From Rebecca billardiae RCC1528 (lineage: Eukaryota; Protista; Haptophyta): 64,000 nucleotides of DNA. The stretch is from NCBI GenBank assembly GCA_965240325.2, contig OZ251237.1, forward strand, positions 558,001 through 622,000. The letters are read 5' to 3'. The position numbers and the translations under genes were made by a program. Of the stretch, positions 43,953 to 51,659 are shown piece by piece. Position 1 is the stretch's first letter. Each line of letters opens with the position of its first letter. The notes beneath the pieces are model-generated. The model was given only the letters and a program-made list of their open reading frames with translations, made no database searches and had not been told where the DNA came from.

Positions 43953-46178
43953 TCAGGCCTTCGCCACCGCGATGAAGTAGCGCTTCACGCGCTTGCCGTT
44001 CGCCCACAGCCGGTTGAAGTAAGAGGATGCCACCGCGCCGTACCCACAGACGGGCGGCGGCTGGCCCGCGCACAGCGGCACGGGGCCACGCGCCTCGCCC
44101 TGCGCCTCCGCTGTCGACCGCACGGCGTGCGCTTCCGCCGTGTCCAGCGGCACAAAGAGCGCGACGCCGCCATCCTCGAGCGCGCCGATCGTGCTCGCGA
44201 GCGAGCGGCCGTAGCGCACGTTGTCCGTGACGACCGTCAGCGTGCCCCCGCGCCGCAGCGCGCCGTGCGCAAGCCGCAGGAAGCTGCCGCTCAGCAGGTG
44301 GTCGCCATCCGAGTCACCCACCCCTCCGCTCCATTCCGGCGGCTGTGGGTGGTTGACGCACACCGCGTCGAAGACGGCCGGCGGGGTGCGCCGCTCGAGC
44401 AGCTCGCGCGCGTCGGCGCACACGACCGCGAGGTTGCGCGCGCGCGCCAGCGCCATCCGCGCGAAGATGTGCTGCGCGCGATCCGCCCGCAGCTCCACCG
44501 CCACCCAGTCCGCGCAGTCGGCATCGTGCGCCGCCTGCTCCGCAACCCACTCGCCCGAGCCGGCGCACAGCTCGAGGTTAAGCCGGCGCTCGCGCGGCGC
44601 GCCCCGGCGCGCGGCGCCACGTGCGCCGAAGAGGCCGGCGTAGTCGATCATCCCGTCGGGCGTGAAGCACGAGCGCGCCAGCGCCGAGCGAAATGCCCCG
44701 AGCGACGGCGGCGCCGCGGCGTCCGAGGCGCCGCCGCCGGCTGCCGCCCGCGCCTGCTGGGCGAGCCACGCGCGCAGCCCAAAGGAGGCGGCGAGCGCGC
44801 GCGTGCAGCGGCGGGCGAGGGCGCGCGGCGGCGGCTCGTCGGCGCCGTGCCCATCCGCGCCCGCCGAGCGCTCTGGCTGCTCCTCGTCCGCGTCAGCGAT
44901 GACGGCGCCGCCATCGTGCGGCAGCAGGCAGAGCGTGCGCCCGTAGCACCGGCCTAGATCGGGCGCGCGCGCGCCGTCCGCGTCGCCCGCGCCTTCGGCG
45001 CCCGCAGCTCGGTCGATCATCTCGAGGAGCGTCTCGGCGTCTCGGCCGAGCTCGGCACGGCGGTGCGCGAGGAACGCCTCGATAGAGCGCTGCGTCATGT
45101 GCACACCGCCTCCGCCGCCGCCTGCGCGGGCCGCGTCCGTCGGGCCGCCGGCACGACGCGGCGTGTCTCGGACCAGAGCTCGCGCGGGCGCGGCCAGCCG
45201 CAGCAGCGTCTGCGCGCGCTCCAGCGATGCCCTGGCCGCCGCCCACTCGCCCAGGAGCGCCTCGGCGCGGGCGAGGGCGACGAAGAGCGCGGGGTTCTCA
45301 GACGGGTGCACTCCCGTCGAGCCCCCCGCCGCGGCCGTGTCCCCCTCCTCGCCGCCGCCCGCGCTGCCTCCCACACCGCCGCCACCGCCAGCCGGCGCCG
45401 AGCTGTCCCGGAACCTTCCTCGCTCGAGCCTGCCGAGCAGCGCGCGCGCCTTCGCGACGCGGAGCGCCTGGCAGAGCAGCACGAGGACGTACTCGTACGA
45501 CGAGTTGTCCGGCTCGCAACCCCACTCGTCGCGCATGCGGCGCAGCGTGCTCGTCGCCAGCCCGACGTCCCCGGTGCGCACGCAGCCCCGCAGCAGAGTG
45601 TTTGCGGTGCGCAGGTTGGGCGTGGCGCGCGCGCGGCCCGCGGCGCCGGACGTCATCTGGTCCAAGAGCACGCGCGCGCTGGCGAGGTCGCCGGCGGCGC
45701 AGTACCCCTTCAGCATGGACGTGTACGCGACCACGTTGGGGACGGGCCCCTGTCGCTGCATCCGCACGAGGAGCTCGAGGCCGCGCTCGAGCTGGCCGCA
45801 GCGCACCGCGGCGTTGATCATATTCGTGTACGTGTGCACGTCGGCGACGCGGTCGTCGATGGCCCGCGCGAAGAGCTGCTCGGCGGAGCTGAGCTTCTTG
45901 CGCTTCGCGAGCGAGGCGATCTGCCGATTGATCGCGATCGCGTCGCCCTTCCGCTTCTTGCCGCCACCGCCGCTCGGGCCGGCCGGCGTACTGCTCCCGT
46001 CGGGAGGCGCACGCGGCGCTTCGGCGGCGCTGGACTGGGCGATCGCCTTGTTCAGCTTCCCGATCGCAGCGAACACGCGCTTTCGCGCGCGCTTGTCACC
46101 GGGCGCCGTGAGCTCGTCCAGCCGCTTGGACAGGCGGGCGAGCCGCTGCCGCAGCTCGTCAGGCCCGCCAGGCGCCAT
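43953..46178 (-). CDS. PPR-TGM protein: pentatricopeptide repeats plus a TrmB-like tRNA m7G methyltransferase domain
   Basis: PPR motifs DVHTYTNMINA, PNVVAYTSMLKGYC, PNLRTANTLLRGC and EPDNSSY. C-terminal LELCAGSGEW, WVAVELR, NLAVVCADA, NHPQPP and VVTDN. Confidence 0.88.
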   Translation of the reverse strand: MAPGGPDELRQRLARLSKRLDELTAPGDKRARKRVFAAIGKLNKAIAQSSAAEAPRAPPDGSSTPAGPSGGGGKKRKGDAIAINRQIASLAKRKKLSSAEQLFARAIDDRVADVHTYTNMINAAVRCGQLERGLELLVRMQRQGPVPNVVAYTSMLKGYCAAGDLASARVLLDQMTSGAAGRARATPNLRTANTLLRGCVRTGDVGLATSTLRRMRDEWGCEPDNSSYEYVLVLLCQALRVAKARALLGRLERGRFRDSSAPAGGGGGVGGSAGGGEEGDTAAAGGSTGVHPSENPALFVALARAEALLGEWAAARASLERAQTLLRLAAPARALVRDTPRRAGGPTDAARAGGGGGGVHMTQRSIEAFLAHRRAELGRDAETLLEMIDRAAGAEGAGDADGARAPDLGRCYGRTLCLLPHDGGAVIADADEEQPERSAGADGHGADEPPPRALARRCTRALAASFGLRAWLAQQARAAAGGGASDAAAPPSLGAFRSALARSCFTPDGMIDYAGLFGARGAARRGAPRERRLNLELCAGSGEWVAEQAAHDADCADWVAVELRADRAQHIFARMALARARNLAVVCADARELLERRTPPAVFDAVCVNHPQPPEWSGGVGDSDGDHLLSGSFLRLAHGALRRGGTLTVVTDNVRYGRSLASTIGALEDGGVALFVPLDTAEAHAVRSTAEAQGEARGPVPLCAGQPPPVCGYGAVASSYFNRLWANGKRVKRYFIAVAKA

Positions 46179-46426
46179 CGCGAGCCCAGTTGCGTGACAG
46201 GCGTGAGCAGTCCGGGTTGTGGTGATACTGAATACCCGCTCCGGAAGCTCCAAGCGCCGCTTTTTGTAGTTGAGTGGGCACTCGGGTCGATCGGCGGGTG
46301 CCTCGTCAGATCGGGCTGAGATCGACAGTGGCGGGATCCGCTTGGCGGCTGACCGCGAGAGAGTTGGGCGCGTGCGAGGGAGGCGTTGACGGCAACGTCA
46401 AGCTCCGACAAGGCGAGCACCGCCGG

Positions 46427-49083: not shown

Positions 49084-51516
49084 TCACTCCCTATCTGGGC
49101 GACTGACCCGCGCGGGCCGGTGCCGGTGGGTCGACCGCGGTGAGTGATGCGCTCGGGAGGACATTGGTGCTTTTTCAATGTAGTCGGGATCATTCCGATG
49201 GACGGTCTGTGCCCCGGCGTCGTCGTACTCGTCCTTGCCGATCCACATCTGCTGAAAGCTATCGAGAGAGGCAAGGATGCTGCCGCCAATCCATGTGGCG
49301 TACTTGCGCTTCGGCGGGGCAACCTGGCGCAGCAGGGCGCGGTGCAGGAGCGGGCGGCGTGAGCGCGAGCACGCTGTGCCGCCGGCACGACCCTCTCCTC
49401 AACCGAGGATCCTCAACCGAGGATCCTCAACCGAGGATCCTCAACCGAGGATCCTCAACCGAGGATCCTCAACCGAGGAGGGCCGCGTCTGCAGGCGTGT
49501 CCATGCACGCGCGTGCAGCCCGCTCCCCACGCGCTCGCGCGTGTGCGCTGCACGCACAACGTGGATCTGACTCTCTGCGGACGAGGGCGCGAGGCTCAAG
49601 AGTTCCTTCTCCAGACGTTCCGAGAAGCCCTCGTGCACCGCGTTGCTGCCTGCAAGCACGATGCTGGCGTACAGATCCCTGTGGATCTCCGGCTCACACT
49701 TCGTGATGGCGTTGTAGACCATACGGCCCACTCCGTCCTCCGGCACCCTAATAAAATAGGGCTGGAAGAGCACCTCGGGCGTGCGGAAGCGCTCGTCGCT
49801 GATCGTGACGATCTGGCCATCGGGCAGCTTGTAGGTTTTCTCGAACTTCGACGGCTCCTCATGCGCCCTCAACCACTCCTCATCGAAGTCCAATGCGACG
49901 TACCCCAGCTTCTCGATGATGTCCCCGGCGACGGCGAGCTCGGCGGCTGTCGTGAACGAGTAGCCGCGCTGTGTGAGCGCGTTCGCCATGAACTGGGTGA
50001 GGTCGCGTCCGCCCAGGTCGAGCCGGAGCACGGCGTGCGGCAGGGCGTAGCCCTCGTAGATGGGCACGGCGTGCGTCACGCCCTCGTCGGACTCGAGCAC
50101 GATGCCCGTCGTCCGGCCCGCCGTGTACAGCGCGAGCACTGCATCCATAGCCACGAACAGCGCAGGGACGTTGAAAGTCTCGAACAGAATCTTGGCCATC
50201 TTCTCGCGGTTGAGCTTCGGGTTGAGCGGCGGCTCCGAGTGCAGCACGGGGCGCTCGCTGGGGTCAACCTGGAGCTCTGCGAAGAAAGTGTGTTGCCAGA
50301 TCTTCTCCATGTCGTCCCAGTTGCTCACCGGCCCGTCGAACGTCGGCCAGCTCAGCGTGAGCACGTCATCCTTGGCCAGCGCCTCGGCACCCATGAACGC
50401 ATCTTTCTGCCCCATGCCAGTCATGACGCCCGCGTGGCGCGGCCGGCCGACGACGGCGGGGAAGACGGTGCTCGGGGCATCGTCGCCTGCATACCCCGCG
50501 CTGATCGACATCGCACTCCCCGCGATCACGATGGGCTTCACTTCTTCCTCGTCATCCCAGTACTCCTGCAGGCGGCGCTGGCGCTGCTCGTAGTCTGAGG
50601 CAGTAGCGGCCGGCGTGGCAGGTGCCGGCGTGGCCGTGAGCGGTGCAAGATGCGCGAGGCGGTGCGGCAGGCCCTGTGATGCCTTGAGCAGCTCGAGCTG
50701 CACGTCGATCACTCGCGAGTGCTGCTCGCCCTCCAGAAGCCGCGAGCGCAGCGCGCATGTGTCGTCCGCCTGCGCACGGGCCAAGGAGTGCGTGCGCGCG
50801 CCCGGCCGCGCCGCCGCCTGCGCCAACGCATCTCGCACGACAGCATGGAGCGCCACGCCCGTGCGATCGCCACCATAGAGGGGTAGCGCGGTGTGGGGTG
50901 CCATCGCGTCGCCCTCGAGCGGAACTGACCGCTGTCGCGCCGCGTTGCGCACGCGCGTCTCGTAGCAGCGCAGCAGCAGCGCGTCACCCAGCTTGCTGCC
51001 CTCGTCGTGCGACCAGCCAGCCGCGAGCACGACGAGTCGGGCGCGTGGCTGGTCGGCGATTGCGCGCAGCTTGAAGAGCTGCTCGCACTCGGCGCCCTCC
51101 TCGGCGTGCACGAGCACGTCGCACGTCGATGCATGCACCTTCCAGCGCGCAGCGCACCGATCCTCAATCGTGTCTGCGACAGTGAAGAGAGTGTGTCCAA
51201 CTGCCGCCTCGAGCGCGGTGCACTCGTTCTCCGGGTGAATGTGGGAGGGCATGTCAAAGGAGCGCAGAGTGGTGCCCTCGGGCAGCAGAGTCTCGCGCGC
51301 CGTCTTCTCCGCGTGCGAGCCCGTCACGCACACGTGGTGCGGCGTGTGCGCTGGCAGGCGGCGCAGGTGTGCGCCGAACGAAGAGCGGCTGAGGAGAAGG
51401 GGCGTGGCGTCGGCGTGCTCGCCAGCCTGCTCGAGCGTGAAGGCGGCGACCAGGAGCACCAGACCAATCGCCGAGGTCAGCAGCCCCCACCGGAGCAGAG
51501 CGCGCGTGGATGACAT
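49084..51516 (-). CDS. Signal/anchor, degenerate methyltransferase-like domain and divergent actin in one protein (intron 49324-49557)
   Basis: One open frame from [26 protein letters not shown] into actin ([41 protein letters not shown]). Splicing joins SQIHV to [32 protein letters not shown]. Confidence 0.85.
49396..49479. repeat. Intronic minisatellite (TCCTCAACCGAGGA)x6; each unit is a mini-hairpin
   Basis: Six exact 14-bp units. TCCTC and GAGGA are reverse complements. Confidence 0.97.
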
Positions 51517-51659
51517 CGTACACGCGGCGCGCAACCAGTGGTCAGCAGCGCCGGCCCGGGTGGCGGGGAGAAGGCTCTGCACCCCGCGCTGCAAGGCGTG
51601 CACTCCTGAGTACTGCACCGCCGCGTTACCAGCCGATTGCAGGTGTGCAGCAACCAGTA

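Follow-up and report, generated by a model that had tools for sequence, protein, structure and literature searches.

Actin is viewed as an ATPase that is confined to the cytosol and the nucleus and needs the cytosolic chaperonin CCT for folding. In yeast Arp7 and Arp9 the nucleotide pockets are degenerate, and the actin fold serves in protein interaction without binding ATP in the canonical way; both are nuclear or cytosolic, far more diverged from actin than the protein described below, and lack a signal peptide or a fused G-like domain. Maturation of diatom silaffins, which are secreted, uses RxL sites. An actin made behind a cleavable partner is outlined for chlorarachniophytes in PMC3542566, which cites the ubiquitin-actin fusion of Archibald et al. 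(2003). In this work we analyzed a gene of Rebecca billardiae RCC1528 (Haptophyta) located on contig OZ251237.1 (assembly GCA_965240325.2), within a 64,000-nt stretch covering positions 558,001 to 622,000. That stretch is called the window, and its numbering is used throughout. The fusion gene at window positions 51516..49084 on the minus strand, the focal gene, encodes a hydrophobic leader, a cysteine-rich N-terminal domain (N-domain), a linker with the motif RRL and an actin whose nucleotide pocket has been replaced. The explanation that we favor, with somewhat better than even confidence, is a real nuclear gene for a leader, a cysteine-rich pseudo-GTPase module, an RRL/dibasic linker and an actin that serves as a nucleotide-independent module in the lumen of the secretory pathway or at the cell exterior.

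The actin part of the focal protein matched the Pfam Actin profile (PF00022, cut-off 27 bits) across the whole fold, with 289.6 bits (4.1e-86) at amino acids (aa) 324-652 encoded by exon 1 and 58.5 bits for the part encoded by exon 2 (Table 1), and solved actins in the PDB matched it at E ∼1e-129. In a search of 5.8 billion proteins, the best matches listed for this part, within a set length window, were conventional actins of many eukaryotes with 57-60% identity; identity to the aligned conventional actins was 61-62%. Because identity to conventional actins lies at 57-62%, the sequence argues for an offshoot of conventional actin and not for a member of a classical Arp class (Arp1-Arp10). The protein shares with conventional actin the acidic N-terminus, the D-loop, the barbed-end groove (82% kept) and the C-terminal ...MWI block. 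It differs in being preceded by the leader and a 300-aa extra domain, whereas conventional actins have no hydrophobic N-terminus, and in the loss of H73, of the C-terminal KCF and of most of the pocket. Only 7/25 pocket residues are kept (standard actin numbering, alignment to conventional actins). The substitutions are D11A, N12G, G13S, S14A, G15M, and K18S in the phosphate-1 region; H73D and Q137D; D154E, G156D, and D157E in the phosphate-2 region; R210G and K213I; and G302S, T303N, M305V, and F/Y306H in the region of the adenine/phosphate loop. Outside the pocket, 216/342 positions (63%) are kept (Fisher p = 0.001), and among positions that are invariant in conventional actins the depletion of the pocket reached p = 1.1e-5. 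Since this depletion is significant, the pocket loss is real and not a chance pattern, and the alignment supports selective loss of the ATP-pocket residues. The intact phosphate-1, phosphate-2 and adenine loops, together with Q137, K18, and K213, that characterize a conventional ATP-binding, polymerizing actin were not found in the focal protein. A first reading made from the letters of the window (the sequence-only reading) had already named the changes DNGSGMCK to AGSAMSIS, Q137D, DSGDG to ESDEG, K213I, and SGGTTM to AGSNAV, the loss of H73, the retained DDEEE N-terminus and D-loop, and a basic tail in place of KCF. All of these are present in our alignments; the tail is 36 aa long and is not conserved in relatives.

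The spliced gene model gives exactly the coordinates 51516 to 49084 that the sequence-only reading had assigned to a single frame joining all parts. The open reading frame (ORF) spans 49441..51618 (-), its first in-frame ATG lies at 51516 with an A at -3, and the region upstream of this ATG is low in GC and non-coding in appearance. Exon 1 (51516..49558, 653 aa) departs from actin homology after ...SQIHV, where the sequence GTGCGTG follows and the frame runs into stops. After the CAG at 49326..49324 the actin reading resumes in the same frame and continues through exon 2 (49323..49084, 79 aa plus stop), so that the two exons on the minus strand specify a product of 732 aa. The GC contents at the three codon positions (0.69/0.47/0.83) are typical of coding sequence in the R. 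billardiae genome. The nearest relative, P0001 and its contig L001 (66% GC, 64% identity in the N-domain), has a 133-nt intron at the exact codon boundary of the focal intron. Within the focal intron, at window positions 49397-49478, a 14-nt unit, gaggatcctcggtt, is repeated in tandem about five times. Adjoining copies form a perfect 18-nt palindrome, aaccgaggatcctcggtt, which makes the array prone to hairpin formation. Owing to the in-frame stops, a transcript that kept the intron would encode a shortened actin.

The same architecture was found in other marine protists. A word search with the N-terminal 320 aa returned three proteins, P0001, P0002, and P0003, all with a homologous N-domain and Pfam Actin, and when 1.84 billion cluster representatives were searched exhaustively with an HMMER profile, only 29 relatives of the N-domain came up. 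Every full-length relative (598-820 aa) carries Pfam Actin, including P0124, P0125/P0152, P0130, P0135, P0139, P0144, and P0163, which measure 626-820 aa. The rest consist of fragmentary short sequences and of short contigs that stop ahead of any actin or do not contain it, and none of the 29 representatives is a full-length protein with the N-domain but without actin. P0163 comes from the transcriptome of a cultured dinoflagellate, Effrenium voratum (MMETSP1110), most other relatives are 2.0-2.3-kb contigs from JGI/Logan/Tara-type sources with one uninterrupted ORF over both domains, and a scan of JGI metagenomes added the relatives L004 and L006. At least 12 contigs or transcripts, independent of one another and differing in sample and GC content, thus have N-domain and actin in one frame. 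A full-text literature search did not turn up any account of an actin with a signal peptide or of this fusion family, in line with the statement of the sequence-only reading that no described example was known to it; the family that includes the focal gene is small, comes from marine protists and is so far undescribed. An actin of the Emiliania coccosphere proteome, EhG30140.1, was considered as a family member and rejected, being grouped with many actin gene models and classed as cytoplasmic by the authors (PMC10290126). A viral origin was also rejected, there being no relative in IMG/VR.

Some of these relatives show peculiarities of their own. In P0125 (aa 671-703, 28.5 bits) and P0152 (aa 675-709, 30.7 bits) a beta-thymosin/WH2 domain (PF01290, cut-off 24.8 bits) directly follows the actin, giving a chain of leader, N-domain, actin and thymosin in which the D-loop is deleted. 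This fusion suggests an actin module that presents a native G-actin groove and would be held monomeric. In L001 (2250-2476) the actin ends early at ...SAWITN*, without the last ∼18 residues of the fold. In L003, the metatranscriptome contig of P0003, positions 1-140 extend the N-domain upstream in frame and are interrupted by a stop (..HEIME*YVLPNG..), which stems from a sequencing error or marks a disabled allele; it is this in-frame stop that accounts for the truncated N-terminus of the P0003 protein call. L004 (JGI contig Ga0181565_10135990, 65% GC), a genomic relative rich in GC, has its intron at a different place, after ..MKWPIG.

Pocket decay in the family is graded. Of the 25 pocket residues, 24 are kept in P0135, 23 in P0002 and P0003, 21 in P0163, 17 in P0139 and P0152, 16 in P0125 and P0144, 15 in P0124, 12 in P0130, and 10 in P0001, and the focal gene stands at the end of this series. 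The D-loop is shortened or replaced in P0125/P0152, P0124, P0144, P0130, and P0001. Six substitutions (D11A, Q137D, D154E, G156D, D157E, and T303N) are common to the focal gene and P0001, and therefore the pocket loss predates the split of these two and has been kept since. Unlike P0001, the focal actin stays close to conventional actin outside the pocket. L004, with its half-decayed phosphate-1 loop (DAGSSTTK) behind the junction SRRLQGDEE, may represent an intermediate stage of pocket loss in the focal subfamily. Because the decay is graded from 24/25 to 7/25, the ancestral fusion probably had a working actin, with nucleotide-binding and polymerization features lost later in several lines. 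Such graded losses fit a compartment in which ATP-driven polymerization is not the point.

The sequence-only reading had described a signal or anchor helix at the N-terminus, and such a segment turned out to be a family-wide trait: 13/13 members with a complete N-terminus start with a hydrophobic segment of 8-26 aa by hydropathy and charge scan. In the focal protein an n-region with two Arg (MSSTRALLR) is followed by a 19-aa hydrophobic run (aa 10-28), and P0001 begins in a similar way; no second hydrophobic or membrane segment was detected in the focal protein by hydropathy scan. The focal leader is predicted to be either a signal peptide or a type II signal anchor. Anchor-like leaders of 18-26 aa are present in the focal protein, P0001, P0002, P0125/P0152, P0130, P0163, and P0143, and in P0163 the anchor is accompanied by a 140-aa Lys/Glu-rich spacer. 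Short leaders of the signal-peptide type are present in P0139 (MAPLRGVLLLTLLAGSNA), P0127 (MALFLVAALLFMTMSHG), P0137, P0142, and P0124. These short cleavable-type leaders should be unable to anchor in the membrane, and both domains of those members would therefore enter the lumen of the endoplasmic reticulum (ER). In the focal protein, P0001, P0125, and P0130, basic residues stand on the N-terminal side of the hydrophobic run, so that an N-in, C-out orientation is predicted. At the level of sequence, secretory routing of the focal protein is supported.

Between the two domains, the Pro/Ala linker and the QRRLQE (aa 313-318) noticed in the sequence-only reading are indeed present. Linker length and sequence vary among relatives, and R314, R315, and L316 are invariant in alignment A2 with non-conserved flanking residues. 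RRL recurs at the domain junction in 8 distinct relatives. The junction reads RRLQE in the focal gene, RRLQG in L004, RRLQD in P0125/P0152, RRLDG in P0002, RRLEG in L006, RRLPE in P0003, RRLGA in P0130, and RRLSG in P0163. P0001 has RALQS, and P0135, P0139, and P0144 have the dibasic junctions KKKRG, MKRG, and NKRK, respectively. The Golgi aspartyl protease ASP5 of Toxoplasma cuts RRL at either end of proteins (PMC4764566). The focal RRL resembles the processing sites of the TEXEL (RRL), PEXEL and RXL systems of alveolates and diatoms in lying in a disordered linker behind a signal sequence, and RRLQE also matches the PEXEL pattern RxLxE/Q/D. It differs from those precursors in being a candidate cleavage site known from sequence, and the KR/KKR of some relatives points to kexin-type convertases instead. 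With the chlorarachniophyte ubiquitin-actin the family shares a C-terminal actin and an N-terminal partner, putatively cleavable in the family, that ends right before the acidic actin N-terminus; in chlorarachniophytes the partner is ubiquitin, cleavage is cytosolic, no leader precedes it and the actin is fully functional. The combination PF00240+PF00022 was found in P0080 and P0102 among the actin matches listed (Amorphochlora amoebiformis, JGI contigs), and the same matches include further actin fusions such as P0042 and P0054 (actin + PF01712; PF17898 + actin).

The N-domain, summarized as 250 aa, had been taken for a methyltransferase-like domain in the sequence-only reading, an assignment that we had to abandon. 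None of the 25 members gave a Pfam match for it at E up to 1, and no sequence match was found in the PDB. An AlphaFold model built with 25 family sequences reached a predicted local distance difference test score (pLDDT) of 84.7 and a predicted template modeling score (pTM) of 0.79, compared with a pLDDT of 56 with four sequences, and its elements follow one another as in a Ras-like G domain (b1-a1-b2-b3-a2-b4-a3-b5-a4-b6-a5). Against 48,161 PDB representatives, VIA-align gave Z 11.7 to an Arf GTPase with 165/185 residues aligned, and 50/50 of the top entries were GTPases. Foldseek searches of the PDB and of AlphaFold DB clusters also returned GTPases only, with low TM-scores (0.25-0.5), as did a shape search of the ESM Atlas with similarly low TM-scores. 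A Class I S-adenosylmethionine methyltransferase was rejected, since there was no methyltransferase among the top structural matches and no Pfam match; an ESM feature search pointed to Methyltransf_21/22 at 0.84-0.85, under the 0.9 reliability level. In comparison with Arf, Sar1, and Ras small GTPases, the N-domain has the same order of secondary structure and superposes on 160-165 residues (Z 10-11.7). It differs from them in lacking the P-loop Lys/Ser, DxxG, NKxD and any sequence-level match, in carrying six conserved cysteines and in standing behind a signal sequence. G1 (GxxxxGK[ST]), G3 (DxxG) and G4 (NKxD) were absent as conserved columns from the alignment, and the loop behind b1 reads TG[SN]xAxx without a conserved Lys-Ser/Thr. 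Further conserved columns are found in the helical extension (L256, R257, D271, E275, K278, Q281, and G282). Judging from the model, the most fitting description of the N-domain is a cysteine-rich, pseudo-GTPase-like module that is new. C63, C99, C121, C132, C144, and C184 are near-invariant and H137 is invariant. The seventh and eighth cysteines occur together in 15 sequences, are both missing in 7 and never occur singly, and P0142 lacks both C144 and C184, a co-loss that rests on one sequence. This pairing hints at a disulfide pattern.

From these findings we infer the following course for the focal protein. The leader would bring the nascent chain into the ER, leaving both domains in the lumen or outside the cell, and the N-domain would be held stable by disulfides. 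A protease of the secretory pathway would probably cut at RRL and thereby free or unmask an actin with the usual acidic N-terminus. The nucleotide pocket of this actin appears to be filled by bulkier or acidic side chains, and since the pocket is replaced while the D-loop and the barbed-end groove are kept, the fold would most likely act as a nucleotide-independent protein-binding or scaffold module and not as an ATP-driven polymer. The architecture suggests that an actin fold is used in the secretory pathway or outside the cell. The secreted, cleaved pseudo-actin of the sequence-only reading is therefore upheld in part: the single gene, the leader, the RRL and the pocket loss stand at the level of sequence, the leader and the RRL with support across the family, and the methyltransferase-like partner does not.

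Several points weigh against this explanation. Folding of actin depends on cytosolic CCT/TRiC and prefoldin, which are absent from the ER lumen, and retention of the D-loop and the barbed-end groove would be expected above all where cytosolic actin-binding partners are at hand. The leader calls come from a simple hydropathy and charge scan and are heuristic, and the 19-aa run of the focal protein could be an uncleaved anchor. Cysteine co-variation was rejected as proof of disulfides, as on the tree each case reduces to a single change and is suggestive, not significant. In the actin-domain tree a single origin of the fused actins was neither supported nor rejected (p-AU 0.46). Against L001, the NG86 ratio of nonsynonymous to synonymous substitution (dN/dS) was 0.64 for the actin part, indicating weak constraint, and 0.31 for the N-domain; the GC content of 0.83-0.86 at third codon positions (GC3) compresses dS, so that these ratios lean upward, are of limited value and, for the actin part, unreliable. 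The focal actin part may be under weak constraint. Some members, as judged from P0002 and L006, might carry a bipartite plastid or periplastid signal.

The retained D-loop (85%) and barbed-end groove (82%) speak for a membrane-tethered protein with its actin facing the cytosol, where the pocket-dead actin would cap, nucleate or recruit actin-binding proteins at an organelle or the plasma membrane. The anchor-length runs (18-26 aa) of the focal protein, P0001, P0002, P0125, P0130, and P0163 would serve such tethering, the need of actin for cytosolic CCT would be satisfied, and the beta-thymosin fused in P0125/P0152 is normally a cytosolic partner. We nevertheless consider this arrangement unlikely, given that the basic residues ahead of the run in the focal protein, P0001, P0125, and P0130 predict the opposite topology, that several relatives have h-regions of only 8-15 aa with small residues before the likely cleavage site and no other hydrophobic segment, and that the cysteines of the N-domain form a conserved even set. 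Alternatively, the leader could be the first half of a bipartite signal that directs an actin-like protein to the relic cytoplasm of a complex plastid, the periplastidial compartment. The host is a haptophyte-type alga, a possible cleavage site is followed by F in the focal protein (VAA/F), by L in P0001 and by Y in P0002/L006, and P0002 and L006 continue with a Ser-rich, basic, acid-free stretch. The segment behind the leader is nonetheless acidic in the focal protein (E29, E33, and D36) and has four Glu in P0001, unlike a transit peptide; most relatives have no aromatic residue at +1, and dinoflagellate P0163 has its anchor and long charged spacer. A survey of one diatom genome found no periplastidial actin (PMC3101018). 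Plastid targeting is in our estimate distinctly unlikely.

We regard it as improbable that the focal gene is a duplicate in decay or without function, derived from a secretory actin gene that was once functional, with its pocket lost through relaxed selection. The dN/dS of the actin part and the decay of pocket and D-loop in several other family members would agree with such a fate, but all 732 codons are read without interruption, the splice sites are good, the GC periodicity is of the coding type, and the decay is concentrated in the pocket, leaving 63% of the other positions, the D-loop and the groove conventional. The six pocket substitutions in common with P0001 are older than the split and have been kept, and the ratio for the N-domain is 0.31. 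A pseudogene fits poorly with the frame, with the splice sites or with changes distributed so selectively. Very improbable is the view that two adjacent genes or an assembly chimera were taken for one frame: the same domain order recurs in one open frame on the independent contigs, the cultured dinoflagellate transcriptome included, and no full-length protein has the N-domain without actin. As the fusion and the intron position are conserved in relatives, two genes, an assembly chimera and a recent transposon capture are excluded for practical purposes.

The luminal or extracellular reading, if true, would give the eukaryotic actin family its first branch in the lumen or outside the cell and would mean that actin can fold without cytosolic CCT; a conserved family of signal-peptide actins would challenge both the cytosolic and nuclear confinement of actin and its dependence on CCT. 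A wider proposal is tentative, and we give it somewhat less than even weight. It holds that several lineages of marine protists, a haptophyte-type alga and a dinoflagellate at the least, send an actin with a disulfide-bonded pseudo-GTPase prodomain to the lumen or exterior, release it at an RRL or dibasic site, and have repeatedly lost nucleotide binding and polymerization, the actin becoming a pure binding module. An RRL processing pathway common to haptophytes and alveolates is possible. The family also provides a natural series of pockets, intact at one end and fully replaced at the other, within a scaffold that is conventional in other respects; this series may be useful to probe nucleotide-free uses of the actin fold. 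The family adds a new domain as well, the cysteine-rich G-domain look-alike. Its members, all of them from marine plankton of ecological importance, have not been annotated so far.

The features of the focal gene are collected in Table 1.

Table 1. Features of the focal gene in window coordinates.
Feature	Position	Strand	Remarks
Start codon and leader, aa 1-28	51433..51516	-	only Kyte-Doolittle peak outside the actin core
Core of cysteine-rich N-domain, aa 56-237	50806..51351	-	Ras/Arf-like G-domain fold (model), without P-loop
Helical extension of N-domain, aa 253-290	50647..50760	-	conserved LRxxL...D.xxE.LKxxQG; helices from AlphaFold model
Pro/Ala/Thr-rich linker, aa 291-307	50596..50646	-	read from translation
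RRL motif, aa 314-316	50569..50577	-	candidate processing site just ahead of acidic actin N-terminus
Actin, exon 1 part, aa 321-653	49558..50556	-	begins DDEEE; Pfam Actin, PDB actin matches
Replaced phosphate-1 loop, AGSAMSIS for DNGSGMCK	50500..50523	-	
Kept D-loop	50401..50439	-	85% of positions 39-51 retained
Replaced phosphate-2 loop, ESDEG for DSGDG	50080..50094	-	change common to P0001
Replaced adenine/phosphate loop, AGSNAV for SGGTTM	49636..49653	-	
Intron	49324..49557	-	234 nt, phase 0, GT..AG, in-frame stops, 14-nt tandem repeat
Actin, exon 2 part	49195..49323	-	Pfam Actin 5.9e-16, profile positions 365-407
Basic, His/Arg-rich C-terminal tail (36 aa) replacing KCF	49084..49194	-	includes TGA stop 49086..49084

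Downstream of the focal gene, a neighboring ORF at 43953..46253 (-) encodes pentatricopeptide repeats (PPR_2, 3e-23) and a Methyltransf_4 domain (TrmB-like, 2.1e-13). It is probably an organelle RNA-modification protein and appears unrelated to the focal gene.

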